Assembly (NCBI RefSeq): GCF_006345805.1
Contig: NC_043026.1
Location: 11,160,001 to 11,224,000 of the forward strand
Reading direction: 5' to 3'
Origin: Octopus sinensis
Lineage: Eukaryota
DNA length: 64,000 nt
The notes under the pieces are model-generated. The model had not been told where the DNA came from and made no database searches. It saw only the letters and a program-made list of their open reading frames with translations. Position 1 is the first letter of the stretch. Each line of letters starts with the position of its first letter. A program made the position numbers and the translations under genes. Positions 606 through 48,616 of this stretch are shown piece after piece.

Positions 606-908
606 AGGGTTATAATGTGTGTGTTGAGGAAAGTTACAACAATAATCCTTAGCAAGTAGAATGTGATGCAGGTTCGATTTTTGGATGAACCCCTTTACAA
701 TGATAATAATAATAATAATAATAATAATAACGAGAGTCTAATATTTATGAAAATATTTATTTGACATAATGAAAGAAGGCAAAAGATTGACGTCCTGGAA
801 TAATTCCAAAAACCATCAACGAATTTTCTGAAACATCAAAACCAAGAACTTCAAAGACTTCATTATCATCCCATCTCAGGAGTAAATAGTTTTGAATATT
901 TTCCGGTT

Positions 909-3900
909 TCAGGACTTCAATTTTTCAGATGTTTGCTGTTCAACATGCCCAGGTATTTGGTAAATACAGTTTGCTGTATCTATTATATAAACATATTCAC
1001 CAATTGTATGTAGATGAGGTGTTTGAATACAGAATTCCCCAACACAAAATTTGTCTTTTATTCTTATCCTCCTCACCAAAGACTTTTCCCTGAACCATTC
1101 CACAAAACAGAGATCATCAGCCCACTCTCCGTCCTCGTCCTCCTTCTTCCCCTCCCTCCTCACAACTACAACATCACCAAAAGATGTGACTCCCACATCA
1201 TCCACAAGCGCTTCTCCCTTCAACTTTTTATATCTTGCCATCTTCCCATGACACACTTCATCTTTACATTTCCCATCTTTGATATCAACTACATCGACAT
1301 AATAAGAGCCGTAGGCATCATTGTCATTGCAAAGGAAACAAAACTTCTCGTTGTACCATTTTTTTCTGTAGTTATTGTTTCTCTCGTCTTCAGTTAAGTC
1401 ACTGATATAATGACCACCACACACGAGTTGATTGTCGTTGTATTTATAAATCGTGCTGTAGTATTTCTCAGTTTTGATGGTATTTAAACAACACAGATCT
1501 CTATTGAAGACCATCATTTCTTTACCAAAGACAACTATGAATCGTTCATCTGTCCACCGACATATACCTAGTGGTTGTTGTTCTAGTTGTTTATGTTGAA
1601 GTATGTCGCCTGTTGTTGTTGTTGTTCTGATTAATGTGACACTTTCTCGAAACATCAACACACTCACATTCTCATCTAACTTAATTAGTTTACTGTTCAT
1701 GTCCCTGATGTCCCTAAAATCATAATCAACAGGTTCCTCGAATGCAGGAATGGAAAGAGGGACCATTGCTGTCCTATATGGAAGTCTCCTCACGGATATT
1801 TCATCAGTTCCTAACATACTCTCCGCTATGTAATTACCACATCTCACCTTTAATCTGCCTTTACCTATTATTTCACCTGATTTACCTCTTCTTCCTCCAT
1901 CTCCATCTCTTCCTCTGTATTCCAATTTATTAATTAATTCATTACTGAATATTTCCTTGTTCGTTTCAGATGTAATGGAAGGGAAATGAAGACCAGAATC
2001 AAGATTTAATGATGACACAGATTCCAGAATGTTCACTTGGTCCCCATCAATCTTTATGCAATGACATTCAATCAATTCAATAAGTACACACCAGTAAATA
2101 TTTCCCACTTTTCTCCATATTACACCATAAGGGATGAGACTTGGCCAAACTTTAGATTTCTGCAAATCTTCTCCATTCAGTTGAAATATTTCTTTTCTTT
2201 TAGGAACCGTGGCCATTATGTGTGAGTCTTGTGTAAAACACACACCACCAACTAAACTTGCAACATTTCTGTGACATAGCAACTGGCCGTCTTCATCGAA
2301 TATTTTAACATTTCCATTATTGGCTTTTTCACACACAACTGTCTTTCCTTCCTCAGAGACATCAAAATCTTTTACTTGAACAGGACATTCATCTGTTTGT
2401 AAACGAGCAACCTGGAAGCTGTCTCGATTCACCATAAACAACCCTTCAACATACAATTCATTCCTTCTTCTCCCTTTGGGGCTTCCAACAAACCTTGTTC
2501 CTTTACAGTTTATACTGAAAAATTCTACTTTATCTTTATAAATTCTTTTATTTAAAAATATTCTTTTGTATTCCCCATTCTGGGTCAAACACAAAATTTT
2601 TTCATAAGATGAATCGAAATGTTTACACCACTCACCCTGAATGTACAAAAAACTTTCATCAATTGTTATCCTATCATGTTGCCAATTAGTTTTCATGTAG
2701 TGTCTAACTGAATGTAAATACTGACCATCACTGTTGAAAAAAATTATGAATCTTCCATTGAGGACAGTGATGATATTGCCAGCAGTAACATTAATATCCT
2801 GGATGTCATTAATATAATTTCCATATTCTCTTCTCGTTAATAATGTTTCAGGTATGTCTATTTGTTTTGTGTCATTCACAGTCGACTGTATTTCATCAAT
2901 ATCAATGAAATACAAATAACATTCATGTTTCCATTTACTACTACAAACCAGTTGATTGTTTAATAAAGAAGCAATACATTCATATTCATTTCTTGTTTGG
3001 TAAATTACAAATGAAAATGGAAATTCTACTTTTAATATTAGCAGTTGGAATTTTCTACCAAATGAATACCCAATTGTAATAACCAGTTTTTCTGACTGCC
3101 ATCGACACATTTTTATAGTGTAAGAATCTTTGATTTTAATAGAATCCAAAAGTTCACCGTCAAATGTGAATATCTTAATGTTTCCATTATTCTCGTCACA
3201 TCCCACAATCAGGTTATTTTCAGTAATAACCAAGGAAGCAATCCTCAATGGTCGTTTGTCTCCAAAACCTTGAGAGACATGAATATGTCTGGCTTTATCA
3301 GAAACTGTCAGATCCTGTAGATATAAAGTAGAAGACAACATTTCACTGACAGAAATGTTTCTAGAAAATACATCTACCAGGTCGATATTAATATTAAGTT
3401 GATTATTTGTAACGAGATCATTAACCAACAAATTATGATCATTTATAGCAAACATACGGCTGTTGTCTATCAAATAAATGAACATTTTATCAATGGATCC
3501 ACCATAGAGATTGTAGGGGCGTATCACTTGAGACAGTAAATCACTGGGGACCATCTCAATACTACAAAGATGACCATCGCCATGACCACCACCACCTATT
3601 TTAGTGTTATACTTAAAAGCTTTTTCCCTAGTAACAATTAATAGCTTTAGCGTTTCTTTTTCTATTTCTAATGATTTCACTACAAAAGGAATATCAATTC
3701 TATGAATTACTTCAACTTGATTATATTTTTTAATGGCTAAAATACCTAAATGAGATGGTTTATCACAATAACAAACAATTTGACCTTCACCCAGCTTACA
3801 CACCCGTACATAAGGCTGTCTTAATAGCACAGTTCTAACTGTTTTTGATAGGTTTCCGATAACCCTTAATTGTTTCTCTAGGGGTAATGTGACACCTATA

Positions 3901-6212
3901 TGATTACAATCCCATCGACATATATCTGTGGCTATAGATGGCAGAGATAATCTGGACACAATGTCTCCTTCATTAGAAATGTATAACAAGCAATCGTGGT
4001 TGATGTCGGACACCACTAACTGTCCATTTGCCAGATGACGTATTTTGGCAATGAGAAGTTTGTCGTTCTCCTTTTCTTTGAGTCGTAGATTTAGATTTCT
4101 GATGTAAGGATTTTTCGTGTATAAATAACAGCCAGACGACCGGTCATGATTCTTGTAAATAAGAACCCTGTTGAGTTGAGTGTCCGGGACATAAAGAGTT
4201 CCTTGGAAAACAGCAATGTGAGGGTGAACAGTGAAAGGTAATTCCCACTGCCATTTAATTTCTCCATATATGTCGTAACATATCAGAATAGAGTGTCTCT
4301 TGAACAGAACATAAAAATAGATATTATCAGAGTAGATGTGATGAGGAAAGCCATAGAATGGAATGTATTTTTCAAAAAGTTCTTCACCTGATGTGGAATA
4401 AAATACCATTTTATTTTCGCTTCCATCTACAACTACAAAATTAATTGGAGTTGCAGCAATGCTGACATTATGATGTCCCAGAGAAATTATTTCTGCAATG
4501 TCAACTTTATCTTCGTTGATCAATAGGATATGGACCTCGCTTTTGTTTTCAGTGGTGGTCACAGCTAGACACTTATTTGATACAATATGACATATTTTCA
4601 TGTAACCAGTTTGCACCTTTATTAAAGGGCCTTTTCTTAGTTCAGGACAGGTGATATACTGAAATCCTTTCATTTCACAATAAAATACCAGGAATCTGTT
4701 TGCATTTATTCTACAACTGAAAGAAGGAACCTCAAGGAAAACTGAATTATTTTGGCTAATTATTTCCCCGTTATCAGTGAATAATTTAGCTTTCTTGTTT
4801 TTGTAAATTATTAATATAGAAGATGTAGACATAGGTAGAATATTTGTAATGTTGTAGCAATCCTCAATATCAATATAGTCTTTTAAACTGGGGGTATGTA
4901 GCTGGTAGTCGTATGACAGTTTGAGCCAAAAATCTTGATTTGTTTCAATGGCATGTGGTTTGCCACAATAATCTGTTACCAAAATGGTATCTTTACCAAC
5001 AGAAATAGAGCAGCATTTCCTGCCAATGTCCCTCTTTGTCACACTACCTTTAGCTGAAATCTTATAGATAATTTGTCCCTGGAGGACATAGAAATATCTT
5101 TGGTACAATGAGATTTTAGTTGGGAGGTGCAGAGAATGGGTCTCTACCTCCCATAACTGTTGGCCATCCAGTTTGTAACAGATTACTCTGTTAATACTGG
5201 AAAATGACATTAAAAGTATATTCTGGACCCCTACAGCAATATCTGTAGGTCTTTCTCTGGTAAGGAATTCATATCCAATTCTATTATCCTCCCAATCAAT
5301 TTGGTAAATAGTCTTACCAAACATTTCTACACCTATAAGTGTAGAATGTTCCAAGTAAGCAACCATATATAACCCCAACTGTATCCTTTTGATCTTGAAG
5401 GTTTTGGGGCTGATTAAAAGAATCATGTTTTTGAAGGGGAGGGTTGCTAGAACCATGTCTTCACCGATTCTGGTGAAATCGGTGACAGAAGATGGACAAT
5501 GGACATCATTTCTGTTACCGCCTTTTGTCATACAACATATTGTCATACAGTGGTGGGAATATGTTATCACACCCCACTGTATGACAATAATATTGGATAA
5601 CATTGTGCTTTTCTCAAATTCTTCTCCAGATTCATCAATTTTTGCTTCTCTGGTCACAATTGGGCAAAGAGGCCGGAATTTTGTTATTATTTTTGGTGGA
5701 TCAATGGTTTTGTTTTTGTCTTGTAGAATATTTCTTTGTAGATAGTGCTCCAGGAACAATTCTAATTTTCCAAAAATAATATATTCTTGATTGTAATTGT
5801 TTTCTTTAAGGTCTTCTGTTAAAATTTCTATTCTCTGTGTAAAATCTTTTAGAAACATATTTTCATCCATTCCGATACTTTTTAAAAAAGTACATATTTC
5901 TTTCCGAGAATTTATCAACAAATTCATTTTGTCCTCATAGGCATTGAATCTTGTATAAAATATGTGTTTGTCCAAAATATTTCGTCTTCCCATTATTTCC
6001 CAGTTTTTAGGGTCTCCTTTATGTTTTTTTCGTTTTGTTGTTGGCTGAGATGAAGCTTGTTTCTCGGACATTTCTCTCCTCGAACCATCGTCTCTCTCAT
6101 ATTTACACCTTTGATAGTCAACTCTTTCTTCATCACTTTTTGTTGTTGAGTCCCTTAAAGCTCTTTTCCGAAAGGCAAGTTTTCTTAAAGTATTTCCCGT
6201 GTCATCTTCCAT
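909..6212 (-). CDS. 1767-aa protein: charged N-terminus, helical/coiled-coil-like segment, ~6 tandem NHL/TolB-like beta-propeller modules
   Basis: 5.3-kb stop-free ORF in AT-rich DNA. Recurring module starts such as LANGQLVVSDINHDCLL..G..LSLPSIATDICRW...GVTLP, ITENNLIVGCDENNGNIKIFTFDGE and SEEGKTVVCEKANNGNVKIFDEDGQ resemble molluscan TRIM/B-box C-terminal propellers. Confidence 0.8.
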   Translation of the reverse strand: MEDDTGNTLRKLAFRKRALRDSTTKSDEERVDYQRCKYERDDGSRREMSEKQASSQPTTKRKKHKGDPKNWEIMGRRNILDKHIFYTRFNAYEDKMNLLINSRKEICTFLKSIGMDENMFLKDFTQRIEILTEDLKENNYNQEYIIFGKLELFLEHYLQRNILQDKNKTIDPPKIITKFRPLCPIVTREAKIDESGEEFEKSTMLSNIIVIQWGVITYSHHCMTICCMTKGGNRNDVHCPSSVTDFTRIGEDMVLATLPFKNMILLISPKTFKIKRIQLGLYMVAYLEHSTLIGVEMFGKTIYQIDWEDNRIGYEFLTRERPTDIAVGVQNILLMSFSSINRVICYKLDGQQLWEVETHSLHLPTKISLYQRYFYVLQGQIIYKISAKGSVTKRDIGRKCCSISVGKDTILVTDYCGKPHAIETNQDFWLKLSYDYQLHTPSLKDYIDIEDCYNITNILPMSTSSILIIYKNKKAKLFTDNGEIISQNNSVFLEVPSFSCRINANRFLVFYCEMKGFQYITCPELRKGPLIKVQTGYMKICHIVSNKCLAVTTTENKSEVHILLINEDKVDIAEIISLGHHNVSIAATPINFVVVDGSENKMVFYSTSGEELFEKYIPFYGFPHHIYSDNIYFYVLFKRHSILICYDIYGEIKWQWELPFTVHPHIAVFQGTLYVPDTQLNRVLIYKNHDRSSGCYLYTKNPYIRNLNLRLKEKENDKLLIAKIRHLANGQLVVSDINHDCLLYISNEGDIVSRLSLPSIATDICRWDCNHIGVTLPLEKQLRVIGNLSKTVRTVLLRQPYVRVCKLGEGQIVCYCDKPSHLGILAIKKYNQVEVIHRIDIPFVVKSLEIEKETLKLLIVTREKAFKYNTKIGGGGHGDGHLCSIEMVPSDLLSQVIRPYNLYGGSIDKMFIYLIDNSRMFAINDHNLLVNDLVTNNQLNINIDLVDVFSRNISVSEMLSSTLYLQDLTVSDKARHIHVSQGFGDKRPLRIASLVITENNLIVGCDENNGNIKIFTFDGELLDSIKIKDSYTIKMCRWQSEKLVITIGYSFGRKFQLLILKVEFPFSFVIYQTRNEYECIASLLNNQLVCSSKWKHECYLYFIDIDEIQSTVNDTKQIDIPETLLTRREYGNYINDIQDINVTAGNIITVLNGRFIIFFNSDGQYLHSVRHYMKTNWQHDRITIDESFLYIQGEWCKHFDSSYEKILCLTQNGEYKRIFLNKRIYKDKVEFFSINCKGTRFVGSPKGRRRNELYVEGLFMVNRDSFQVARLQTDECPVQVKDFDVSEEGKTVVCEKANNGNVKIFDEDGQLLCHRNVASLVGGVCFTQDSHIMATVPKRKEIFQLNGEDLQKSKVWPSLIPYGVIWRKVGNIYWCVLIELIECHCIKIDGDQVNILESVSSLNLDSGLHFPSITSETNKEIFSNELINKLEYRGRDGDGGRRGKSGEIIGKGRLKVRCGNYIAESMLGTDEISVRRLPYRTAMVPLSIPAFEEPVDYDFRDIRDMNSKLIKLDENVSVLMFRESVTLIRTTTTTGDILQHKQLEQQPLGICRWTDERFIVVFGKEMMVFNRDLCCLNTIKTEKYYSTIYKYNDNQLVCGGHYISDLTEDERNNNYRKKWYNEKFCFLCNDNDAYGSYYVDVVDIKDGKCKDEVCHGKMARYKKLKGEALVDDVGVTSFGDVVVVRREGKKEDEDGEWADDLCFVEWFREKSLVRRIRIKDKFCVGEFCIQTPHLHTIGEYVYIIDTANCIYQIPGHVEQQTSEKLKS

Positions 6213-6219
6213 TGTGAAT

Positions 6220-6240
6220 CTATAATGAAATAAAAGGAAA
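6220..6240 (-). promoter_or_regulatory. Candidate 3' splice acceptor just upstream of the propeller ORF ATG
   Basis: Minus strand tttccttttatttcattatAG|attcacaATG. Confidence 0.55.
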
Positions 6241-6290: not shown

Positions 6291-6880
6291 CATCATCATC
6301 ATCATTTAGCGTCCGCTTTCCATGCTAGCATGGGTTGGACGGTTCAACTGGGGTCTGTGAAGCCGGAAGGCCGCATCAGGCCCAGTCTGATCTGGCAGTG
6401 TTTCTACGGCTGAATGCCCTTCCTAACACCAACCACTCCATGAGTGTAGTGGGTGCTTTTTACGTGCCACCCACACAGGTGCCAGACGGAGCTGGCAAAC
6501 GGCCATGAACGGATGGTGCTTTTATGTGCCACCGGCACGGAGGCCAGGCGAGGCTGGCAAACGGCCATGAACGGATGGTGCTTTTACGTGCCACCGGCAC
6601 GGGGGCCAGGCGAGGCTGGCAACGGACACGAACGGATGGTGCTTTTACGTGCCACTGGCACGGGGGCCAGGCGAGGCTGGCAACGGACACGAACGGATGG
6701 TGCTTTTACGTGCCACCGGCACAGGGCCAGGCGGGGCTGGCAAACGGCCATGAACGGATGGTGCTTTTACGTGCCACTGGCACGGCTGGCAACAGACACG
6801 AACGGATGGTGCTTTTACGTGCTACCGGCACGAAGGCCAGGCGAGGCTGGCAATGGACACGAGTGGATGGTGCTTTTACG
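6291..6880 (-). mobile_element. RTE-clade LINE 3' UTR remnant with ~60-bp internal tandem repeats and (GAT)n tail
   Basis: Same sequence family as 14462-15218, which is continuous with an RTE-type ORF C-terminus; about 7-8 units, most carrying GTGCC-ACC-GGCAC. Confidence 0.75.
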
Positions 6881-6892
6881 GATGGTATTTTA

Positions 6893-7074
6893 GGGAAATA
6901 ATGGGAAAACAAAGTACTTTGGACAAAGCACATATTTTATACAAGATTCGAGGCATTTGAAGACAAAATGAATTTGTTGATAAATTCTCGAGAAGAAATG
7001 TGTACTTGTTTAAAAAGTATAGGAATGGATGAAAATATTTTTCAAAAAGATTTTACACAGAGAATAGAAATTTT
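6893..7074 (+). pseudogene. Inverted paralogous fragment of the N-terminal helical region of the 1767-aa ORF
   Basis: Translates HIFYTRFEAFEDKMNLLINSREEMCTCLKSIGMDENIFQKDFTQRIEI versus HIFYTRFNAYEDKMNLLINSRKEICTFLKSIGMDENMFLKDFTQRIEI; one extra G (GACAAAGCAC vs GACAAACAC) shifts the frame; runs into the N gap. Confidence 0.8.
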
Positions 7075-7174
7075 NNNNNNNNNNNNNNNNNNNNNNNNNN
7101 NNNNNNNNNNNNNNNNNNNNNNNNNNNNNNNNNNNNNNNNNNNNNNNNNNNNNNNNNNNNNNNNNNNNNNNNNN
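7075..7174. other. Assembly gap (100 N, probably unknown true size)
   Basis: Run of exactly 100 N. Confidence 0.99.
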
Positions 7175-7464: not shown

Positions 7465-7629
7465 ACGACAGGCTTCTTTCAGTTTCTGTCTACCAAATCC
7501 ACTCACAAGGCATTGGTCGACCCGGGGTTATAGTAGAAGATACTTGCCCAAGATGTCACGCAGTGGGACTGAACCCGGAACCATGTGGTTGGTTAGCAAG
7601 CTACTTACCACACAGCCACTCCTGCGCCT
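7465..7629 (-). mobile_element. CORE-like SINE (family B) 5' half
   Basis: Reverse complement of AGGAGTGGCTGTGTGGTAAGTAGC...CTTGGGCAAGT head seen at many loci. Confidence 0.85.
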
Positions 7630-7690
7630 ATTATCATCATCATCATTATTATTATTATTATTATTATTATCATCATCATCATCATCATCC

Positions 7691-7742
<52 letters not shown>

Positions 7743-7826
7743 CATCATCATCATCCTTATTATTATTATTATTATTATTATTATCATCATCATCATCATC
7801 CTTATTATTATTATTATTATTATTAT
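7629..7826. repeat. Compound (ATT)n/(ATC)n microsatellite
   Basis: Directly visible. Confidence 0.97.
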
Positions 7827-7828
7827 AT

Positions 7829-8010
7829 ACGGTGGCAAATTGGCAGAATCATTAGCACACTGGGTGAAATGCTTGACAGTATTTCGTCCTTTACATTCTG
7901 AGTTCAAATTCCGCCGAGGTCAACTTTACCTTTCATCCTTTCAGGGTCAGTAAAATAAGTACCAGTTGAGTACTGGTGGGGGTCAATGTAACCAACTTAA
8001 CCCCTCCCCC
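7829..8010 (+). mobile_element. Degenerate family C SINE (Meta-like domain TTCATCCTTTCGGGGTCGA)
   Basis: Matches family C copies at 18361, 22424 and 54150. Confidence 0.75.
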
Positions 8011-8444: not shown

Positions 8445-8754
8445 CCGTGATCACCGTGACCGACCAGGCTATCAGATGTTGCAACACATTGCTGGTCACA
8501 ATGCGCTTTGCATTGTTTTAGCCTTCAAATGATGCCACCCTGCTGGCTAAGCAAGCAGGCCAACAGAAGAAGGAGTGAGAGAAAGTTGTGGCAAAAGAGT
8601 ACAGCAGGGATTCGCCACCACCCCCTGCCGGAGCCTCGTTGAGCTTTACGTGTTTTCGCTCAATAAACACACACAACGCCCGGTCTGGGAATCGAAACTG
8701 TGATCCTACGACCACGAGTCCGCTGCCCTAACAACTAGGCCATTGCACCTCCAC
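8445..8754 (-). mobile_element. Family A SINE head with alternative tail B
   Basis: 14-bp TSD ATAACTAAACTATA at 8431-8444 and 8755-8768; same head as 219-605 but different 3' half. Confidence 0.85.
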
Positions 8755-8848
8755 ATAACTAAACTATACATTATATTATATTCTGGAAATGAAATGTTTA
8801 CTTGTAATCTAAAACTGTAAATTGTTTAAACAATTTCTAACTATAAAA

Positions 8849-9844
8849 TTATGGAGATGTACTTGCATAGCAAGTGACTTGATCTGAGATCGTATGCTGA
8901 AACGAAAACAACTGCAGTGTGGAAGGTGTTTGTAAGCCATTTAAGAAACACACAAAAGACGTTCGATTCACTTCAACATTTAAGTTTAATTTGTCAAAAT
9001 ATTTTCGTCGCTTTGAGACCGCGACCTCTTCACTGACAAAACTTCGTGCTGCATCTCAGTAAATTTAGTCTTGACGTTTGTCCCTTCTTTAGGTTTAGTG
9101 CTTCGACTGTATGATAAATCCTTTTTGGGTAAACCTTCAGTGAGATGCAATGTCTAATGAAATGAAGCTGTTGCTTAGCTGTTATTCTTCTCAAGCAACA
9201 AGTAACGGCTGTCCTCAGAGTTTTGGTAGCCTGGCTCAAGCTTTCGGAATTACGGAGATGTACTTGCATAGCAAGTGACTTAATCTGACAAAAATCCATG
9301 CTGCATCTCAAAAATCCATGCTGCTGAGATGCAGCATGGATTTTTGTCAGTGAACAGGTCGCGGTCTTAAAGCGATGAAAATATTTTGACAAATTAAACT
9401 TAAATGTTGAAGTGAATTGAACGGATTTTGTGTGTTTCTTAAATGGCTTATAAACACCTTCCACACTGCAATTGTATATATATATATAAACCTTATTCAG
9501 CATGGATTTTTGTCAGTGAACAGGTCGCGCTTAAAGCGATGAAAATATTTTGACAATTAAACTTAAATGTTGAAGTGAATCGAACGGATTTTGTGTGTTT
9601 CTTAATGGCTTACAAACACCTTCCACGCTGCAATTGTATATATCTATATATATATATATATATAATATTATATATATATATAAACCTTATTCAGCATGGA
9701 TTTTTGTCAGTGAACAGGTCGTGGTCTTAAAGCGATGAAAATATTTTGACAAATTAAACTTAATGTTGAAGTGAATCGAACAGATTTTGTGTGTTTCTTA
9801 AATGGCTTACAAACACCTTCCACGCTGCAATTGTATATATATAT

Positions 9845-9875
<31 letters not shown>

Positions 9876-10029
9876 TATATATAAACCTTATTCAGCATGG
9901 ATTTGTGTCAGTGAACAGGTCGCGGTCTTAAAGCGATGAAAAATTTTGACAAATTAAACTTAAATGTTGAAGTGAATCGACGGATTTTTGTGTGTTTCTT
10001 AAATGGCTTACAAACCCTTCCACGCTGCA

Positions 10030-10101
<72 letters not shown>

Positions 10102-10880
10102 TTAATCAGCATGGATTTTTGTCAGTGAACAGGTCGCGGTTTAAAGCGACGAAAATATTTTGACAAATTAACTTAAATGTTGAAGTGAATCGAACGGATT
10201 TTGTGTGTTTCTTAAATGGCTTACAAACACCTTCCACGCTGCAATTGTATATATATATATTATATATATATATATATATAAACCTTATTCAGCATGGATT
10301 TTTGTCAGTGAACAGGTCGCGGTCTTAAAGCGATGAAAATATTTTGACAAATTAAACTTAAATGTTGAAGTGAATCGAACGGATTTTGTGTGTTTCTTAA
10401 ATGGCTTACAAACACCTTACACGCTGCAATTGTATATATATATATAAACCTTATTCAGCATGGATTTTTGTCAGTGAACAGGTCGCGGTCTTAAAGCGAC
10501 GAAAATATTTTGACAAATTAAACTTAAATGTTGAAGTGAATCAAACGGATTTTGTGTGTTTCTTAAATGGCTTACAAACACCTTCCACGCTGCAATTGTA
10601 TATATATATATATATATGTATATATAAACCTTATTCAGCATGGATTTTTGTCAGTGAACAGGTCGCGGTCTTAAAGCGATGAAAATATTTTGACAAATTA
10701 AACTTAAATGTTGAAGTGAATCGAACGGCTTTTGTGTGTTTCATAAATGGCTTACAAACACCTTCCACACTGCAATTGTATATATATATATATATATATA
10801 TATAAACATTATTCAGCATGGATTTTTGTCAGTGAACAGGTCACGGTCTTAAAGCGACAAAAATATTTTGACAAATTAAA
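8849..10880. repeat. Satellite-like array (9 units, ~150-bp core plus variable (TA)n) preceded by an inverted full monomer; Helitron/HINE-like
   Basis: Unit starts near 9332, 9498, 9692, 9893, 10107, 10290, 10456, 10636, 10814; inverted monomer 8849-9059 carries hairpin CTTGC-ATA-GCAAG; solo copy at 62120-62321. Confidence 0.8.
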
Positions 10881-11868
10881 CTTAACTATAAAATGGTATT
10901 GTGAAAATAAAACAATATCCATTTAAGAGTATATTTACGTTTATAACATACGAGTAGTCCTAATGAATGTTTAACAATGTAAATCTGTTGGTAAATTTTG
11001 TGTTAAATAAATATGTATCAGAAGAATATTATTTACCAGAGTCAGTAGTTGGGCTGAGATTTTGGCTTGATGTCTTTCTGTCTTAGAAATATTCTGTGAG
11101 TCTGCTTCTTTCGCACAGCAATGAAAATATGGCAACAGTTAAGAGGATACTTATAATATATCCGGGAGTAGTAGCATTGCCTCGTGTGTGTGTGTGTGTG
11201 TAGATAGATAGATATGCACATTTATGTATATACATATATATAATATATATATATATAATGTATATATAAACCTTATTCAGCATGGATTTTTGTCAGTGAA
11301 CAGGTCGCGGTCTTAAAGCGATGAAAATATTTTGACAAATTAAACTTAAATGTTGAAGTGAATCGAACGGCTTTTGTGTGTTTCATAAATGGCTTACAAA
11401 CACCTTCCACACTGCAATTGTATATATATATATATATATATATATAAACATTATTCAGCATGGATTTTTGTCAGTGAACAGGTCACGGTCTTAAAGCGAC
11501 AAAAATATTTTGACAAATTAAACTTAACTATAAAATGGTATTGTGAAAATAAAACAATATCCATTTAAGAGTATATTTACGTTTATAACATACGAGTAGT
11601 CCTAATGAATGTTTAACAATGTAAATCTGTTGGTAAATTTTGTGTTAAATAAATATGTATCAGAAGAATATTATTACCAGAGTCAGTAGTTGGGCTGAGA
11701 TTTTGGCTTGATGTCTTTCTGTCTTAGAAATATTCTGTGAGTCTGCTTCTTTCGCACAGCAATGAAAATATGGCAACAGTTAAGAGGATACTTATAATAT
11801 ATCCGGGAGTAGTAGGCATTGCCTCGTGTGTGTGTGTGTGTGTAGATAGATAGATATGCACATTTATG

Positions 11869-11900
<32 letters not shown>
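10629..11900 (+). repeat. ~642-bp direct tandem duplication at the end of the satellite array
   Basis: Identical ORFs at 10631 and 11273; flanking unique sequence repeated near-identically. Confidence 0.85.
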
Positions 11901-11914
<14 letters not shown>

Positions 11915-12072
11915 TGTGTGTGTATATATATGTATATATGTGTGTGTGTATGAGCCAATGAGGGAGAACTTTACATGCTATCAAAACTTGTTAGAAATAA
12001 CAAACAAATTTTCTTCAAACAACATATTTCCTTTTCATAAACACACATACAAATATATGTGTGTGTGTGTGA

Positions 12073-14461: not shown

Positions 14462-15218
14462 CATCATCATCATCGTTTAACATCTGTTTTCTGTGCTAGC
14501 ACAGGTTGGACGGTTCGACCAGGGTCTGGGAAGCCAGGAGGCTGCACCAGGCTCCAGTCTTGATCTGGCAGTGTTTCTACAGCTGGATGCCCTTCCTAAC
14601 GCCAACCACTCCGTGAGTGTAGTGGGTGCTTTTTATGTGCCACCGGCACAGGTGCCAGGGGAGGATGGCAATGGGCACGATCGGTTGGTGCTTTTTACGT
14701 GCCACCGGCACAGAAGCCAGTCAAGGCGGTGCTGGCAAACGGCCACGATCGATGGTGCTTTTTACGTTCCACCGGCAAGGGGGCCAGGCGAGGCTGGCAA
14801 CGACCATGATCGGATGGTGCCTTTTACGTGCCACCGGCACGAGGCCAGTCGGGGCAGCGCTGGCAACGGCCACGTTCGGATGGTTCTCTTACATACCACC
14901 GGCACTGATATCACAGCTGCAATTTCCATTGATGTTGATCGATTTCGATTTTCACTTGCCTCTTCAGGTCTTCACAAGTAGAGTTTTGTGTCCCAAGAAG
15001 GAAAGGTATGCATAAGTGGACTGGCTACGGGTTATGGTCTCACTTGTCCTGCCGGGTCTTCTCACGCACAGCATACTTCCAAAGGTCTCGGTCTCTAGTC
15101 ATTTCCTTGGTGAGACCTAAAGTTCAAAAGTCGTGCTTCACCACCTCGTCCCAGGTTTTCCTGGGTCTGCCTCTTCCACAAGTTCCCTCTACCGCTAGGG
15201 TGTGGCACTTTTTCGATG
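14462..15218 (-). mobile_element. 5'-truncated RTE-clade LINE (ORF C-terminus plus 3' UTR)
   Basis: Minus strand ~15213-15040 reads KKCHTLAVEGTCGRGRPRKTWDEVVKHDF*TLGLTKEMTRDRDLWKYAVREKTRQDK*, an RTE-type C-terminus, followed by the repeat-bearing UTR and (GAT)n tail. Confidence 0.8.
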
Positions 15219-17127: not shown

Positions 17128-18264
17128 CTATTGACAGGGATTTTCTCTAGAATGTATGTCCTCATGTCTCCTTAAGATTCTTCGATCTGAGAATGACTTA
17201 CCACAAGTATGACAACGATAGGGTTTCTCTCCTGTATGAGTACGTTTGTGTTTAGTTACATCACTGTTTTGAGAGAATGATTTGCCACAGATATCACAGT
17301 GAAATGGCTTCTCTCCTGTATGAATATATCTGTGAATGGTTAAGTGATTGGTTTGAGAGAATGATTTACCACATGTGTCACAACTATATGGTTTCTCTCC
17401 AGTATGAGTGCGTTTGTGAATATTCAAGTGACCTTTTTGAGAAAATGATTTATCACAGATGTCACAATGATATGGCTTCTCTCCTGTGTGAACGCGTTTG
17501 TGATTGATTAAGTGACTTCTTTCAGAAAATGCTTTGCCACAGATATTACAGTGGTATGGCTTTTCTCCAGTATGAACACGTTTGTGTGATATTAAGTAAC
17601 TGGCTTCAGAGAAAGACTTACCACAAAAATCACAATGATGTGGTTTCTCTTGTGGACGAATGCGCTTCTCTTCGGAATGGATACGTTTGATGTGTACATT
17701 CAGGTAACTTGTTTGAGAAAACGATTTCCCACAGACCCCACAACGATACGGCCTCTCTCCAGTATGGACACGTTTATGATTGGTTAAATGACAACTTTCA
17801 GAGAAAGCTTTACCACAGATTTCGCAGTGATATGGCTTCTCTCCCGTATGAATACGTTCGTGAGAAGTTACCTGAGATTTTTCAAGGAATGATTTACCAC
17901 AGATATTACATTGATATGGCTTCTCTCCTGTATGAATGCGTTTGTGTTTAATTAAGGTGCTGCCTACAGAGAATGCCTTCTCACAGATATCACACTGATA
18001 TGGTTTTTCTCCTGTGTGAATACGTTGGTGACTAATTAATACACTACTTCTAGCGAATGATTTACCACAGACATCACAGTGATATGGTTTTTCCCCTGTA
18101 TGAATACGCAGGTGAGTGGAAAAATTACCTTTTTGAGTGAATGATTTATCACATATATCACAATGGTATGATGACTTTTCTTTCTGCTTCAGTACCATCT
18201 CTTCAGTAATATCAATCATTTTAGGTTGCGTTATGCGTTTCGAGTCACTTATACCACTTTCCAT
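17128..18264 (-). CDS. C2H2 zinc-finger protein A1, 378 aa, 12 fingers
   Basis: 12 CxxC-x12-HxxxH units with TGEKP linkers; paralog of A2/A3 lacking exactly one 28-aa finger. Confidence 0.93.
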
Positions 18265-19509: not shown

Positions 19510-21119
19510 TTATAAAAATTTTATCCTGTTTTTCAATTGTGTATGTATTTCCCCCTTTTGAGAATCATTACATCACATTTCTCGATCCCAAATTCCATGC
19601 CAATATCTTTGCTAACCATCTGCACAGTTGCCATCAAACTCTCGATATCTTTCTTAGTCTTACCAAATAACTTTAGGTCATCCATAAATCACAGATTGTT
19701 TACTTTCACCCTGCCTAGCATCTACCCCACACACATCTTTCTTAAAACGTTCGTTAATGGCAATATGCCGACAACAAATAGGAGAAGTGACAGACTGTCC
19801 CCTTGAAAGATTCCTCTTTTGATATTTACCTCTCCCAGCTTATCTCCCCAAGCTGTGAGTTCAGTTCGCCACGTTGTCATTGAATTTTGTATTAAATCCA
19901 GGATATTGTGTGAGACCTTAAACAGTTTAAGGCATCCAATAATCAACGAGTGTGGGAATATGCCATATGCTGTCCTGTAGTCCACCCATGCCATCACCAA
20001 ATTTTTGTGTCTCTTCCTGCAATCAGCCAGGATAGTCTTATTGATCAGTAATTGATACTTCATTCCTCTGCTCTTACGTCTACACCCTTCTTGTTCCACT
20101 AGTAGTAGCTCGTTCTCATCTAGATACTTATAGATGCTGTTTAATATGATGCCCATCATCAGTTTCTACATCAATGGCAAACAAGATATTGGTCGGAAAA
20201 ATCCAACCGCATTTCCTTTACTGGGATCCTTCTGCCATAGTACTGATCCTCGTTTTGTCATCCAGGCCGGTACTCGGATGCCACTACTCAGTATTTCATC
20301 CAGCTGTCTCGCAATTCTCCTATGCAGAGCTGTCAAGTTTTTAAGCCAAATTCCCTGAACCCTATCTGGGCCAGGCGCTTTCCAGTTAGGAATTTTCCTG
20401 CACTGATCTCTAATCATCTCAGTTATTCTCAAAACCTCCTGCTGATACACTCCACTCTCGTCCTTGAGTGTCTTTAACGATTCTGCTTCAATTTCGTGTT
20501 GTTTTTCCTCAGACCATATGTTTGACCAGAATCTTTTGCTTTCTTCAGCATCTGGCACGAATTTTTGACCTTTTTCTTTCCCATCCAGTTCCTTATAGAC
20601 ACACTTCTGATTCTGTTCATTAAATCTGTTTATATCTCTTTAGTTTGTGTTTTAGCTTTCAACCTCTGTTTTAATTCCTCAATCACATTAATTTCCTTTC
20701 TCTTCACCCTGTATTTCCTCTCTAGCCCAACATATTTCTCTCACTGAACTTCGTTTCCCTTTTTCCATTCAAGAATATTACTATGCTTTCTGGGCTCATT
20801 AATAGACTGCGTTATTCTCCTTTTCCTCCATAGTTCCTTCAGGTTATGTTGACATTTACCTTTGGCTTTCAAACCCAGCTACCAGGCTATAAAGATCAAG
20901 ATGGCATTTATCAAATTGTTGGTCTTTGATGATGTCAGTCCTGATATCACCAGTGATACCATTTATCTTCCTGACCCATTCATTGACTTTCTTTCTGTCT
21001 ACTTTTTTAAACCCCCGTATGAAAGCTCTGTTCACCAAAGGTTCAAATATCAATGATTTCATTTAAAATGGATATCTGCTCCTCGGTTCTCTCATCGCTT
21101 TCCTGATCAATCGTTTTCC
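19510..21119 (-). mobile_element. Decayed R4/Dong-like non-LTR retrotransposon RT fragment
   Basis: IPNWKAPGPD, FRPISCLP, MAWVDY..AY, IKRGIFQGDSLS and FMDDLKLF motifs across frameshifted ORFs at 20166-20558 and 19722-20159. Confidence 0.85.
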
Positions 21120-22326
21120 TGTCTCTAGAATGAATGTCCTCGTGTTTCCTTAAGATTCTTCGATCTGAGAATGATTTACCACAAGTATGACATCTATAGG
21201 GTTTCTCTCCTGTATGAGTACGTTTGTGTTTAGTTACATCACTGTTTTGAGAGAATGACTTTCCACATATATCACAGTGATTTGGTTTCTCTCCTGTATG
21301 AATATATCTGTGAATGGTTAAATGAATATTTTGAGAGAATGATTTACCACATGTGTCACAACTATATGGTTTCTCTCCAGTATGAGTGCGTTTGTGAATA
21401 TTTAAGTGACCTTTTTGAGAAAATGATTTATCACAGACGTCACAATGATATGGCTTCTCTCCTGTGTGAACGCGTTTGTGGTTGATTAAGTGACTTCTTT
21501 CAGAAAATGCTTTGCCGCAGATATTACAGTGGTATGGCTTTTCTCCAGTATGAACACGTTTGTGTGACAACAAGTAACTGGCTTCAGAGAAAGACTTACC
21601 ACAAAAATCACAGTGATGTGGTTTCTCTTGTGAACGAATGCGCTTCTCTCCAGAATGAAGACGTTTGTTGTGTTCATTCAAATAACTTGTTTGAGAAAAC
21701 GATTTCCCACAGACCCCACAACGATACGGCCTCTCTCCTGTGTGGATACGTTTATGGTTGGTTAAGTGACATTTTTCTGTGAAAGCTTTACCACAGATTT
21801 CGCAGTGATATGGCTTCTCTCCCGTATGAATACGTTCGTGAGAAGTTAAGTGAGATCTTTGAAGAAATGATTTACCACAGATATTACATTGATGTGGCTT
21901 CTCTCCTGTATGAATGCGTTTGTGTCCAGCTAAGTTCCTGCCTGCTGCGAACGTCTTACCACAGATATCGCAGCGATATGGTTTATCGCCTGTATGAATA
22001 CGTTTGTGACTAATTAATATACTACTTCTGGCGAACGATTTACCACAGGCATCACAATGAAATGGTTTTTCTCCCGTATGAATACGTATGTGAGTAGTTA
22101 AGTAATTTTGGGTAGAGAACGATTTTCCACAGACATCACAATGATATGGTTTTTCCCCTGTATGAATGCGCAGGTGAATGGAAAAATTACCTTTTTGAGT
22201 GAATGATTTATCACATATATCACAATGGTATGATGACTTTTCTTTCTGCTTCAGTACCATCTCTTCAGTAATATCAATCATTTTAGGTTGCGTTATGCGT
22301 TTCGAGTCTCTTAATCCACTTTCCAT
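21043..22326 (-). CDS. C2H2 zinc-finger protein A2, 427 aa, 13 fingers, LINE-derived 25-aa C-terminus
   Basis: 13 fingers; diverges from A3 after HSRD at 21120. Confidence 0.92.
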
Positions 22327-25183: not shown

Positions 25184-26404
25184 ATGGAAAGTGGATTAAG
25201 AGACTCGAAACGCATAACGCAACCTAAAATGATTGATATTACTGAAGAGATGGTACTGAAGCAGAAAGAAAAGTCATCATACCATTGTGATATATGTGAT
25301 AAATCATTCACTCAAAAAGGTAATTTTTCCACTCACCTGCGTATTCATTCAGGGGAAAAACCATATCATTGTGATGTCTGTGGAAAATCGTTTTCTGCCC
25401 AAACTTACTTAACTACTCACATACGTATTCATACGGGAGAAAAACCATATCGCTGTGAAGCTTGTGGTAAATCATTTGCTGCAAGAAGTATACTAATTAG
25501 TCACAAACGTATTCATACTGGCGATAAACCATATCGGTGTGATATCTGTGATAAATCATTCTCTGTAGGCAGCACCTTAACTAAACACAAACGCATTCAT
25601 ACAGGAGAGAAACCATATCAGTGTGATATCTGTGGGAAATCATTCTTTCAAAGAGCTCACTTAACTTCTCACGGACGTATTCATACGGGAGAGAAGCCAT
25701 ATCACTGTGAAATCTGTGGTAAAGCTTTCTCTGAAAGTTGTCATTTAACCAATCATAAACGTGTCCATACTGGAGAGAGGCCGTATCGTTGTGGGGTCTG
25801 TGGGAAATCGTTTTCTCAAACAAGTTACCTGAATGTACACATCAAACGTATCCATTCCGAAGAGAAGCGCATTCGTCCACAAGAGAAACCACATCATTGT
25901 GATTTTTGTGGTAAGTCTTTCTCTGAAGCCAGTTACTTAATATCACACAAACGTGTTCATACAGGAGAAAAGCCATACCACTGTAATATCTGCGGCAAAG
26001 CATTTTCTGAAAGAAGTCACTTAATCAATCACAAACGTATTCACACAGGAGAGAAGCCATATCATTGTGACGTCTGTGATAAATCATTTTCTCAAAAAGG
26101 CCACTTGAATATTCACAAACGCACTCATACTGGAGAGAAACCATATAGTTGTGACACATGTGGTAAATCATTCTCTCAAACCAATCACTTAACCATTCAC
26201 AGATATATTCATACAGGAGAGAAACCGAATCACTGTGATATCTGTGGCAAGTCATTCTCTCAAAACAGTGATATAACTAAACACAAACGTACTCATACAG
26301 GAGAGAAACCCTATAGTTGCCATACTTGTGGTAAGTCATTCTCAGATCGAAGAACCTTAAGGAAACACGAGGACATTCATTCTAGAGACAATCCCTGTCA
26401 ATAG
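25184..26404 (+). CDS. C2H2 zinc-finger protein A3, 406 aa, 13 fingers
   Basis: 13 fingers; inverted paralog of A1/A2. Confidence 0.93.
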
Positions 26405-33536: not shown

Positions 33537-33838
33537 GTGAATACATTGTTTGGCCATATATATGTATCATCAATATTTCTTAACTTTTTAAAGATTGAAT
33601 GTTTTACAGAACAGACTTAACCCTTTAGCATTTAAACTGACCATATCCGGCCAAAAGTATTCTGCGTGTTTTATGTTCAAACTGGCCAGATCTGGTCTCT
33701 CACACCAACCCTATAATATCGTTTGTTGAGTGAAAAGTTGGACATGAGGCATCAGATGCAGCATGCAAGAGAGGAGACTACTTTGGGTTGGAATGTGATG
33801 CAAATGAATGAATGAAGACAGCTGTGTAAAGCAGTACT

Positions 33839-34210
33839 GGAGGCGCAATGGCCCAGTGGTTAGGGCAGCGGACTCGCGGTCATAGGATCGTGGTTTCGAT
33901 TCCCAGACCGGGCGTTGTGAGTGTTTATTGAGCGAAAACACCTAAAAAAACTCCACGAGGCTCCGGCAGAGGATGGTGTACTCTTTCACCACAACTTTCT
34001 CTCACTCTTACTTCCTGTTTCTGTTGTACCTGTATTTCAAGGGGCCAGCCTTGTCACTCTCTGTGTCACGCTGAATATGCCCGAGAACTACGTTAAGGGT
34101 ACACGTGTCTGTGGAGTGCTCAGCCACTTACACGTTAATTTCACGAGCAGGCTGTTCCGTTGATTCGGATCAACCGGAACCCTCGTCGTCGTAACCGACG
34201 GAGTGCTTCC
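33839..34210 (+). mobile_element. Family A SINE, tail A
   Basis: TSD AAAGCAGTACT at 33828-33838 and 34211-34221. Confidence 0.9.
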
Positions 34211-38981: not shown

Positions 38982-39670
38982 GAGGCGTAATGGCTCAGTA
39001 GTTAGGGCAGTGGACTCGCGGTTTCGATTCCCAGACCGGGCGTTGTGTGTGTGTTTATTGGGCGAAAACACCTAAAGCTCCACAAGGCTCTGGCAGGGGG
39101 TGGTGTCGACCCCTGTTGTACTCTTTCATCCCAACTTTCTCTCACTCTTTCTTCCTGCTTCTTGAGTAATGCTGCGATGGATTGGCGTCCCGTCCAGCTG
39201 GGGGGGGGGGGACACATACGTCATAGAAACCGGGAAACTGGACCCATAAGCCTCACTGGGCTTTAAAAGGGCGCATTTATTTTTGTGGAGGCGCAATGGC
39301 CCAGTGGTTAGGGCAGTGGACTCGCAATCGTAGGATCGCGGTTTCCATTCCCAGACCGGCCATTGTGTGTGTGTTTATTGAGCGAAAACACCTAAAGCTC
39401 CACGAGGCTCCGGCAGGGGGTGGTGTCGACCCCTGTTGTACTCTTTCGCCCCCGACTTTCTCTCACTCTTTCTTCCTGTTTCTTGAGTAACGCTGCGATG
39501 GACTGGCGTCCCGTCCAGCTGGGGGGAACACATACGCCATAGAAACCCGGAAACTGGGCCCACGAGCCTGGCTAGGCTTGAAAAGGGCACATAAATAATA
39601 AAAATATATATAGATATATATATAAAGCACGATTTATTTGTGATCAGAGTTCGAAAACCAAGGTACTACT
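38790..39670. mobile_element. TIR-bounded element (~50-bp imperfect inverted repeats) hosting two nested SINEs
   Basis: AGTAGTACC...TCTGATCACGAATAAATCGTGCTTTA at ~38791-38841 versus its reverse complement at ~39622-39670. Confidence 0.5.
38981..39592 (+). mobile_element. Two tandem family A SINE heads with tail C (V-domain-like GCGATGGACTGGCGTCCCGTCCAG)
   Basis: Copies 38981-39276 and 39287-39592. Confidence 0.8.
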
Positions 39671-40515: not shown

Positions 40516-40840
40516 TTTGTTGTGATACCAGTGGCACGTAAGAGAACCATCCGAACGTGGCCGTTGCCAGCGCCGCCCTTCCTGGCCTCGTGCTGGTGGC
40601 ACATAAAATGCACCAACCGATTGTGACCGTTGCCAGCCTCACCTGGCCCCCGTGCCGGTGGCATGTAAAAGCACCTACTACACTCACGGAGTGGTTGGCG
40701 TTAGGAAGGGCATCCAGCCGTAGAAACATTGCCAGATCAGCCTGGTGCAGCCTTCTGGCTTCCCAGACCCCAGTTGAACCGTCCAACCCATGCCAGCATG
40801 GAAAGTGGATGCTAAACGATGATGATGATGATGATGATGA
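40516..40840 (+). mobile_element. RTE 3' UTR remnant
   Basis: GTTGGCGTTAGGAAGGGCATCCAGC...AAACGATGATGATG. Confidence 0.8.
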
Positions 40841-42522: not shown

Positions 42523-43177
42523 GGTGGAAGCACTCCGTCGGTTACGATGACGTGGGTTCCGGTTGATCCGAATCAACGGAACAGCCTGCTCGTGAAATTA
42601 ATGTGTAAGTGGCTGAGTACTCCACAGACACGCGCACCCTTAACGTAGTTCTCGGGGATATTCAGCGTGACACAGAGAGTGACAAGGCCAGCCCTTTGAA
42701 ATACAGGTACAACAGAAACAGGAAGTAAGAGTGAGAGAAAGTTGTGGTGAAAGAGTACAGCAGGGATCACCACCATCCCCTGCTGGAGCTCGGATGGAAG
42801 CACTCAGTCGGTTACGACGACGAGGGTTCCGGTTGATCCGAATCAACGGAACAGCCTGCTCGTGAAATTAACGTGTAAGTGGCTGAGCACTCCACAGACA
42901 CGCGCACCCTTAACGTAGTTCTCGGGGATATTCAGCGTGACACAGAGAGTAACAAGGCCGGCCCCTTGAAATACAGGTACAACAGAAACAGGAAGTAAGA
43001 GTGAGAGAAAGTTGTGGTGAAAGAGTACAGCAGGGATCACCACCATCCCCTGCCGGAGCCTCGTGGAGCTTTTTAGGTGTTTTCGCTCAATAAACACTCA
43101 CAACGCCCGGTCTGGGAATCGAAACCGCGATCCTATGACTGCGAGTCCGCTGCCCTAACCACTGGGCCATTGCGCCT
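42523..43177 (-). mobile_element. Family A SINE with tandemly duplicated 3' portion
   Basis: Near-identical ORFs at 42573-42803 and 42843-43097. Confidence 0.87.
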
Positions 43178-47075: not shown

Positions 47076-47545
47076 GTGAGTGGTTGGCGTTAGGAAGGGC
47101 ATCCAGCTGTGGAAACACTGCCAGATCAGACTGGAGCCTGGTGCAGCCTCCTGGCTTCCCAGACCCCGGTCGAACCGTCCAACCCGTGCTAGCGTGGAAA
47201 ATGGACGTTAAACGATGATGATGATGATGAATAGTGAGTGGTTGGCATTAGGAAGGGCATCCACTGTAGAAACTCTGTCAGATCAGATTGGAGCCTGGTG
47301 CAGCCTCCTGGCTTCCCAGACCCCGGTGAAACTGTCCAACCCGTGCTAGCACGGAAAAAGGACGTTAAACGATGATGATGATGATGATGATGAATAGTGA
47401 GTGGTTGGCGTTAGGAAGGGCATCCAGCTGTAGAAACTCTGTCAGATCAGATTGGAGTCTGGTGCAGCCATCTGGTTCGCCAGCCCTCAGTCAAATGGCC
47501 CGACCCATGCCAGCATGGAAAGCGGACGTTAAACGATGATGAATA
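47076..47545 (+). repeat. Three head-to-tail RTE 3' tails
   Basis: AATAGTGAGTGGTTGGC...GATGATGA unit repeated three times. Confidence 0.85.
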
Positions 47546-48616
47546 GCAAGAGCACACAGACAACGCAAACCTCTGCCAAGGCAACACCATTGTCCTCTCA
47601 ATGATTAGCCAGAGATGATTTTTAAAATGAGAATATCTGAAATAAACTCGACTGCTCTCCTCGTGCCGGTGACACGTAAAAAGCACCATCCATTCGTGGC
47701 CGTTGCCAGCCTCGTCTGGCACCTGTGCCGGTGGCACACAAAAAGCACCCACTACACTCATGGAGTGGTTGGCATTAGGAAGGGTATCCAGCCGTAGACT
47801 GGTGCAGCCTTCTGGCTTCCCAGACCCCAGTTGAACCGTCCAACCCATGCTAGCATGGAGAACGGATGCTAAACAATGATGATGATGATGTAGCATGGTG
47901 GGTTCATGCCAGATGTAGAAGTGATCATAGAGCAACACGGGATGAAATCTTTCACTCAAGAAGACAAAGCACAACTCAGTCTGATAATCACAATCATGAG
48001 TGCAACACCCTAACCACTAGGCCAAACCATAACGTATTTGTAAACATCAAGGTGGAGGCACATGGCTTAGTGGCTAGGGCGTTGGACTCCTGATTGTAAG
48101 ATTGTGGTTTCGATTCCTGGACCGGGGGCGACGCGTTGTGTTCTTGAGCGAAACACTTCATTTCACATTGCTCCAGTCCACTCAGCTGGTAAAAATAAGT
48201 AATCCTGCAAGAGTGTAATGGGTGCTATTATGTACCACCAGCACAGGTGTTATTTGCACAACACCAGTATCTGTAACGACTGTGATTTTACTTGACTTGA
48301 TGGGTTTTCTCAAGCACGACATAAAGCCAAAGTCTTAGTCATTCGTCATTGTCTCTGTGAGACCCAACACTCAAAAGGAGCTTTTCACGTGCCACGGGCA
48401 TTGGCTGCTTTGTCTCCGTGTGGCCCAACGCTTGAAAGGGGCTTTTTACATGCCAGTAACACGACACCATCACTGGCCACGACGACGATTGACGGGTCTT
48501 CTCAAGCACATCATATCACCACCATAGCAACCAGGAAATTGGCCCAAGAGTCTATGGCTCAGGAAGAAACTTTACTCTACTTAAACATCAAGATGAAAAA
48601 AAAATTCAAGAGATAG

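Follow-up and report, generated by a model that had tools for sequence, protein, structure and literature searches.

What does a giant protein consist of, and from what did it arise, when domain searches recognise nothing in it? The question is raised by an open reading frame (ORF) of 1767 codons on the reverse strand of a 64,000-nt stretch of the Octopus sinensis genome (NCBI RefSeq assembly GCF_006345805.1, contig NC_043026.1, positions 11,160,001 to 11,224,000; hereafter the window, from whose first letter all positions are counted). An initial annotation had described the product as a derivative of TRIM-NHL proteins that lacks the RING and B-box domains and has multiplied its propeller. 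Its observations as a whole, comprising the ORF, the modules, their motifs, a splice acceptor and neighbouring zinc-finger genes, were confirmed here, and the proposed derivation is supported by profile-profile comparisons (hhalign), by profile matches to PDB sequences, by relatives outside the family retrieved in a deep search and by the negative searches for RING and B-box. We consider this architecture and ancestry of the six-propeller protein very likely. Taken together, the locus is probably best explained as one copy of a tandemly expanded octopod family, the members of which are RING-less, possess six NHL-type propellers and would act as multivalent binding platforms.

A maintained reading frame in one large exon

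The ORF (909..6212, ATG to TGA) was found exactly where a 5.3-kb stop-free frame had been annotated. It is real and maintained, and no chance ORF: the five remaining frames contain 88-179 stops each across the same interval, while 3% of simulated neutral change introduced about 8 stops into the ORF and preserved the open frame in 0 of 300 runs. With a G+C content of 35%, the ORF encodes a protein with a predicted mass of 205 kDa. The maximal hydropathy over 19 amino acids (aa) is 1.31 and a transmembrane segment is therefore unlikely; likewise, no signal-peptide-like hydrophobic stretch could be seen by eye in the highly charged N-terminus.

As had been pointed out initially, a splice acceptor just upstream of the ATG (Table 1) is not separated from it by a stop, the nearest upstream in-frame stop (6272-6270) lying beyond the acceptor. 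In the exon maps of the paralogs P0003 and P0006, an intron of 11-17 kb ends at the same point, and paralog models read x-F-T-M-E-D across the junction with a variable first residue (R/L/K), which is the pattern expected from a codon split at the acceptor. Nearly the whole protein is encoded by one 5.4-kb exon, preceded by a short 5' exon; the Octopus bimaculoides homolog P0012 is annotated as a single exon of 5352 nt. The suggestion that unseen upstream exons could add N-terminal domains was not borne out, since the paralogs that use this acceptor gain only 2 aa (P0006) or 31 aa (P0003) from their annotated upstream exons, and no domain.

Six diverged modules on a common scaffold

The initial annotation placed six module starts about 250-290 aa apart and listed a motif scaffold shared by the modules. 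All of the listed motifs are present (NGQLVVSD at aa 729, KIFTFDG at 1013, KIFDEDG at 1303, ICRW at 764 and 1550, MCRW at 1035, VTLP at 774 and ATVP at 1334), in register at the proposed starts. The modules are also as highly diverged as had been stated: self-BLASTP of the ORF (E<=10, word size 2) detected no internal repeat, which is visible at the profile level only. Profiles built from close paralogs alone yielded weak and local matches between modules, and convincing matches required the addition of Argonauta sequences and divergent orthogroups (alignment A6). With the latter alignment, hhalign assigned high probabilities to the pairs M2-M3 (93%), M2-M4 (94%), M3-M4 (92%), M3-M6 (95%) and M4-M6 (94%), followed by M1-M2 (78%), M2-M6 (69%) and M4-M5 (60%), M1 to M6 denoting modules 1 to 6. 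The alignments span 170-250 columns and start near the boundaries drawn originally. Judged from these profiles, the protein contains six homologous modules of about 240-290 aa each. Modules 1 and 5 are the most divergent, module 5 standing furthest from its sister modules; it includes a Gly/Arg-rich segment (aa ~1440-1465), and module 3 a variable GGGGHG loop (aa ~868-890).

Relationship of the modules to NHL propellers

Searches of the window protein against Pfam, NCBIfam and, as a single sequence, the PDB returned nothing significant. Its only Pfam matches are sub-threshold and concern propeller models of the IFT140 and WD types, and the Pfam NHL model (PF01436) does not match it. In a deep profile search run without a word index, residues 175-1330 were compared to 1.84 billion representatives. 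Only 31 proteins were retrieved, about 25 of them members of the family described below and a few of them molluscan outsiders, which matched over propeller regions with E-values from 1.4e-6 to 5e-4. Among the outsiders are one protein each of the types RING + B-box + NHL (P0060, from a cuttlefish), B-box + NHL and RING + B-box (from a mussel), as well as an NHL fragment; the lowest of these E-values (1.4e-6) belongs to the alignment of the module 4 region with the NHL region of P0060. The Pfam NHL threshold is passed by the outside relatives P0060 (29.1 bits) and P0061 (22.2 bits), the latter also giving a weak SGL match. The own relatives of P0060 possess RING, B-box, Filamin and NHL domains, which is the canonical class VII TRIM-NHL architecture.

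Each of the six modules was matched by hhalign to an alignment of the outside propellers (Table 1), whereas reversed and column-shuffled controls remained at or below 1.9%. No match to the same alignment was obtained with the N-terminal 174 aa. When the family profile was compared to PDB sequences, the top 12 matches were all NHL propellers of TRIM71, Brat, TRIM3, TRIM2 or Thin (best E 1.3e-4). Modules 3, 4 and 5 contain blades to which the canonical NHL blade motif aligns; blades of the TRIM2 and TRIM71 NHL domains align to module 3, and the module 5 blade VSEEGKTVVCEKANNGNVKIFDEDGQLLC aligns to those of TRIM71. Furthermore, a motif block (…VVsD..n..l..f..dG…iC.W….vTLP..kQl) occurs in the same order in the modules and in the outside RING/B-box/NHL proteins. 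At the level of profiles, these comparisons establish homology between each module and the single propeller at the C-terminus of molluscan RING-B-box-NHL proteins.

The latter proteins (P0060 from Acanthosepion pharaonis and P0064 from Potamilus streckersoni) are the nearest relatives outside the family. They share with the modules the block '…VVsD…f..dG…L.lps.p..iC.W….v.VTLP..kQl..i', but are only 440-660 aa long, have one propeller following RING/B-box and a coiled coil, and are about 20% identical to the modules. With the class VII TRIM-NHL proteins (TRIM2, TRIM3, TRIM71/LIN-41, Brat, Mei-P26 and Thin/TRIM32) the octopod protein has in common the six-bladed NHL-type propeller and its blade signature 'G.ivVaD..N.rI.vF..dG.l'. 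Conversely, it is devoid of RING, B-box and filamin domains, possesses six propellers instead of one and scores below the Pfam NHL threshold.

A frameshift ahead of the conserved C-terminal tail

In nearly all full-length homologs, the last 54 aa or so form a conserved tail (…KYLLLR..DNEVFEVLG.D.S.NS.MVFGIIPGRQSFAFF..K), which lies outside the window ORF. The corresponding sequence is nevertheless found in the window in another frame (Table 1). It shares 70-81% of its residues with the tails of P0006, P0008 and P0018, and its stop (757-759) overlaps an AATAAA. The TGA stop at 909-911 results from a 1-nt deletion at ~921-926 relative to intact paralogs; the segment around the deletion displays in-frame length differences of 24 nt among paralogs. 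As the conserved tail continues at 921..760, the true coding unit spans approximately 760..6212. The ORF end given by the initial annotation was thus correct as to the stop, but the tail beyond the deletion had been missed. The 54-aa tail is probably the last blade of module 6, so that in the window copy either one probable blade has been lost or the assembly is in error.

Structure models

AlphaFold (AF2) models were computed for two overlapping pieces of the protein, from alignments of 25-26 paralogs. From aa 207 on, the models are all-beta with regular short strands. Module 4 is the best modelled, with 24 strands at a predicted local distance difference test score (pLDDT) of 70-84, which fits six blades of four strands. 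Module 6 has about 21 strands (pLDDT ~70-84); those that are missing could plausibly be supplied by the out-of-frame tail. Approximately 22 strands are predicted for module 2 (pLDDT 50-75); in module 1, 16 regular strands cover aa 207-357 (pLDDT 55-74), the rest being of low confidence. Structure prediction and profile comparison of the individual segments had been proposed as a check on the propeller assignment. The all-beta fold, the strand number of module 4 and the profile homology agree with it, but modules 3 and 5 were not modelled with confidence.

Foldseek searches with both models returned multi-propeller proteins at the top (DDB1, LRP2, CPSF160, SF3B3, IFT-A and UTP; E 1e-11 to 1e-17). 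Since the global template modelling (TM) scores, which refer to whole multi-domain models, are only about 0.15, these matches support the presence of several propellers and no more.

An N-terminal region without RING or B-box

The charged region containing KRKKHK and the helical segment noted initially were both recovered. The N-terminal 68 aa have an isoelectric point (pI) of 9.6 and contain KRKKHK at aa 60-65 (nt 6018-6035), possibly a nuclear localisation signal. Helices are predicted, with low pLDDT, at aa 69-101, 103-112, 117-137 and 143-162. The helical region (aa 69-174) is the most variable part of the protein among paralogs, with a pairwise identity of ~0.4 and at least three sequence classes.

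RING-type Pfam models matched neither the window protein (E<=10) nor any of 18 family members (E<=1), and zf-B_box was equally absent from all 18, including the 30%-identical orthogroup and Argonauta; only two Cys residues occur within the N-terminal 174 aa. The RING and B-box by which the TRIM/RBCC family is recognised are therefore missing from the octopod protein, and no E3 ligase activity of its own is expected. Where the coiled coil follows the B-box in that family, a helical stretch is predicted here at aa 69-162 (pLDDT ~50-59). When aligned by hhalign to the RING/B-box/coiled-coil parts of the RING/B-box relatives, the helical N-terminal region reached a probability of less than 1%.

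A fast-evolving octopod family

Every named homolog belongs to Octopus vulgaris, O. sinensis, O. bimaculoides or Argonauta hians and bears the label uncharacterized or hypothetical ('uncharacterized protein LOC…' in RefSeq), because standard domain annotation misses the family. The window protein belongs to this family by full-length collinearity, the giant exon and the (frameshifted) tail. The family includes dozens of copies at 50-80% identity; the window protein is 59-81% identical to its members over up to 100% of the query, and 30-44% identical to divergent orthogroups and Argonauta. Among the 1.84 billion representatives of the deep search, the six-module architecture was found in no protein of squid, cuttlefish or other molluscs, and literature searches for the family, its LOC identifiers or multi-NHL architectures returned nothing relevant. 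As far as these searches reach, the family is known only from octopods and is undescribed.

Many of the O. vulgaris copies are located on one 29.2-Mb chromosome. One 43-kb stretch of this species carries two intact tandem copies and an inverted copy with several frameshifts; in the latter (L003, 3903-9346, reverse strand), the reading frame changes at least three times, and a portion has been annotated as a gene of 411 aa. Thus, the cluster holds decaying members beside intact ones. By contrast with this cluster, two divergent lineages (P0044/P0065/P0066 and P0039/P0068/P0069) are represented by orthologs on other chromosomes in each of the three Octopus species, which suggests a few old singletons and a younger, expanding cluster. 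Several public models of family members appear to be mergers: P0001 (2526 aa) of two family copies, P0002 of a seven-finger C2H2 array and a family member, and P0011 of DUF4371/transposase-like parts and a family member. The annotation of the cluster is unreliable.

When the window copy is compared to three paralogs, the ratio of nonsynonymous to synonymous substitution rates (dN/dS) amounts to 0.50-0.65, with values down to 0.23-0.29 in windows of 60 codons in modules 1-3. Module 3, the most conserved module, has a ratio of 0.24 at aa 729-788 and of 0.49-0.60 over its whole length. In the disordered N-terminus (aa 1-68) the ratio is ~1.0-1.65; outside it, no window clearly above 1 was found in the sliding-window analysis of these four sequences, which is no proper test of positive selection because of gene conversion and the small number of sequences. 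The family evolves fast but under constraint. The most variable parts among paralogs are aa 1-160, ~1120-1200 and ~1600-1767, and the most conserved part is aa ~560-840.

Synonymous divergence (dS) is itself a mosaic. Relative to the same paralog it amounts to 0.07 in module 5 and 0.64 in module 1, an approximately ninefold difference (O. vulgaris OX597841.1, loci L002 and L003), which suggests gene conversion or (unequal) recombination among paralogs. Several public models have internal deletions, the junctions of which join equivalent blade motifs (e.g. …LDSIK|NGEYKRIF…).

Possible function and alternative explanations

To our knowledge, as far as literature searches reach, the NHL propeller is known as one per protein. 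The single NHL propeller of LIN-41 binds its ligand, and other NHL propellers bind proteins. In Brat and Mei-P26 this ligand-binding module binds RNA directly (PMC4015489, PMC9070667). Because single NHL propellers are ligand-binding discs, a RING-less chain of six would constitute a multivalent scaffold without ligase activity of its own. By this analogy, the protein would most likely work as an intracellular multivalent binding platform, on which protein or RNA ligands would meet six propeller faces, each diverged in its own way, and the helical N-terminal region may be a candidate for self-association, oligomerisation or the choice of partners. We put forward this specific role of a binding scaffold only tentatively, and the multivalent sensor of RNA, ligands or pathogens that the initial annotation had proposed would likewise be a putative role. 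Propellers strung on one chain as a binding platform are also found in DDB1, CPSF160 and SF3B3, in the YWTD domains of LRP/megalin and in the WD domains of IFT-A; these, however, are seven-bladed and WD40-like or extracellular and of the YWTD type, and without sequence relationship to the octopod protein, so that the likeness is architectural only.

Several points weigh against this explanation. Membership in the NHL class is reached through transitive profile evidence, because the Pfam NHL threshold is attained by no member of the family: only 2 of 18 match the model at all, the better at 18.5 bits against a cut-off of 20. The mean pLDDT of both AlphaFold models is low (49.7 and 43.8), modules 3 (low in both models) and 5 (very low) are essentially unmodelled, and blade geometry was judged from strand counts, so that the closure of six propellers is putative. 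The modules have near-neutral pI values (5.6-8.6), which give RNA binding no particular support. Finally, considering its frameshift and the decayed copies nearby, the window copy may be non-functional.

The modules might belong to another class of propellers (WD40-like, YWTD/LDLR-type or SGL-type enzymatic), their likeness to NHL and TRIM proteins being generic. The sub-threshold Pfam matches to IFT140- and WD-type models, the WD40 and YWTD multi-propeller proteins heading the Foldseek results and the weak SGL match of P0061 would be in line with this possibility. We regard it as very improbable, however, given that the top 12 PDB sequence matches are all TRIM-NHL domains, that the outside relatives passing the NHL threshold carry RING and B-box, and that the motif block is collinear with outside NHL proteins. 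In addition, a module length of 240-290 aa and a number of 24 strands are as expected of six blades rather than of the seven typical of WD40, and the Foldseek ranking, with its low TM-scores, is driven by multi-domain length. Even less credible is that the ORF is part of a mobile or selfish element and owes its copy number to transposition. The dozens of copies at 50-80% identity, the P0011 model with its DUF4371 transposase-like parts and the abundance of repeats around the ORF could be taken in this sense. Yet Pfam and NCBIfam searches revealed no transposase, integrase or reverse-transcriptase domain, the copies are arranged in tandem with a concentration on one chromosome, the divergent members are orthologs at single loci in three species, and the gene has a spliced 5' exon.

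Inactivation of the window copy is a more serious alternative, although we still find it rather unlikely: the family would be real, but this copy would be a recent pseudogene in a birth-and-death cluster. The deletion that takes the conserved tail out of frame is the obvious argument, and no gene on record has exactly the window product. Immediately upstream, part of a paralog is found in inverted orientation at an assembly gap, and in the O. vulgaris cluster a copy with multiple frameshifts adjoins intact ones. Against inactivation, all 1767 codons before the lesion are intact, a state that 3% of neutral change would have disrupted with about 8 stops, and dN/dS relative to the paralogs is 0.50-0.65 rather than ~1. 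Moreover, the lesion is situated in a short A-run within an indel-prone segment and could therefore be a sequencing or assembly error, and even a protein short of only its last blade could retain five intact propellers.

An NHL propeller has here been amplified sixfold in one polypeptide, its ligase partner domains have been lost, and the gene has been multiplied to dozens of copies in octopods only. The family is a natural case for the origin of multi-propeller proteins by whole-domain duplication. The known gene expansions of octopuses form a short list (protocadherins, C2H2 zinc fingers and G protein-coupled receptors), to which it adds a large, lineage-restricted member. Its fast evolution, tandem birth-and-death and gene conversion fit what is seen in recognition families of immunity and genome defence, although such a fit is no proof. 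More speculatively, and in our estimation improbably, the family might form an octopod-specific, rapidly diversifying intracellular recognition system, composed of multivalent sensors or restriction factors for RNA or protein derived from viruses or transposons. Such a system would be reshuffled by gene conversion, would have most of its variation in propeller 6, in the N-terminal region and in parts of propeller 4, and would possibly co-evolve with the neighbouring C2H2 zinc-finger clusters. It would represent an independent invention comparable to the vertebrate TRIM5/finTRIM or NLR expansions and, in immunity or genome defence, a new example of the convergent evolution of expanded sensor families.

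Genomic surroundings

The coordinates of the gene regions and of the surrounding repeats and zinc-finger genes are compiled in Table 1. Head-to-head with the ORF, an inverted partial copy of the family N-terminal region (aa ~69-130) is found at 6896-7072 on the forward strand, 73% identical in aa and 91% in nt to 5821-5969. It stops at an assembly gap of 100 N (7075-7174); either the paralog is truncated, or the rest of the copy has been lost in the gap.

Table 1. Features of the window with their positions, strands and supporting evidence (percentages for modules are hhalign probabilities against outside propellers).
Feature	Position	Strand	Evidence or remark
Disordered basic N-terminal region, aa 1-68	6009..6212	-	AF2: without secondary structure, pLDDT 21-33
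Helical region and linker, aa 69-174	5691..6008	-	AF2 DSSP, pLDDT ~50-59
Module 1, NHL-type propeller, aa 175-454	4851..5690	-	Beta strands from aa 207; 94.2%, E 1.2e-7
Module 2, NHL-type propeller, aa 455-724	4041..4850	-	93.0%, E 3.5e-7
Module 3, NHL-type propeller, most conserved, aa 725-999	3216..4040	-	98.6%, E 6.8e-16
Module 4, NHL-type propeller, best-modelled, aa 1000-1289	2346..3215	-	98.6%, E 5.1e-16
Module 5, NHL-type propeller, aa 1290-1529	1626..2345	-	96.8%, E 2.9e-10
Module 6, NHL-type propeller, shortened in window copy, aa 1530-1767	912..1625	-	95.9%, E 6.4e-9
Frameshift site, 1-nt deletion relative to intact P0003-type sequence, in run GAAAAA	921..926	-	tblastn frame change -3 to -2, sequence read, alignment with three intact paralogs
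Conserved 54-aa C-terminal tail of the family (…NYLLLRWDDNEVFEVLGFDVSENSLMVFGIIPGRQSFAFFHYVK)	760..921	-	Translation; frame -2 (ORF in -3), out of frame in window copy
Splice acceptor AG (tattatAG|A)	6220..6221	-	Phase 2, 7 nt upstream of ATG; sequence read
SINE-like repeat	6300-6900, 14471-14905, 40528-40821, 43736-45769, 47078-47873, 53394-53737, 58875-59427		
Second interspersed repeat, ~145 nt	215-359, 8612-8756, 33838-33978, 39284-39425, 43037-43177, 52045-52188		90-96% identical
C2H2 zinc-finger ORFs	17128-18264, 21043-22326, 25184-26404	-, -, +	Near-identical N-terminus (starts MESG.(S/R)), same finger order

The zinc-finger cluster reported beside the ORF was found as six ORFs encoding C2H2 zinc-finger arrays between 17 kb and 62 kb. 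Three of them share an almost identical N-terminus and the finger order (Table 1), which indicates recent local duplication, including one inversion. A dispersed repeat resembling a short interspersed nuclear element (SINE), with an internal tandem unit of ~61 nt (TTTTACGTGCCACCGGCACGGGGGCCAGGCGAGGCTGGCAA…), is present in many copies in both orientations and yields spurious ORFs of 125-175 aa. Two copies of the ~145-nt repeat flank the ORF in inverted orientation, yet they are no element termini. Terminal inverted repeats around the ORF were accordingly rejected, the 145-nt arms being a dispersed repeat found throughout the window.

The remaining features comprise a 331-aa ORF (56571-57566, reverse strand) of Asn/Thr-rich low complexity with no Pfam match, a long (ATT/ATC)n microsatellite (7600-7835) and a satellite array with a period of 166-214 nt and embedded (TA)n and (TG)n runs (9300-11940), in which two segments ~642 nt apart are 100% identical.

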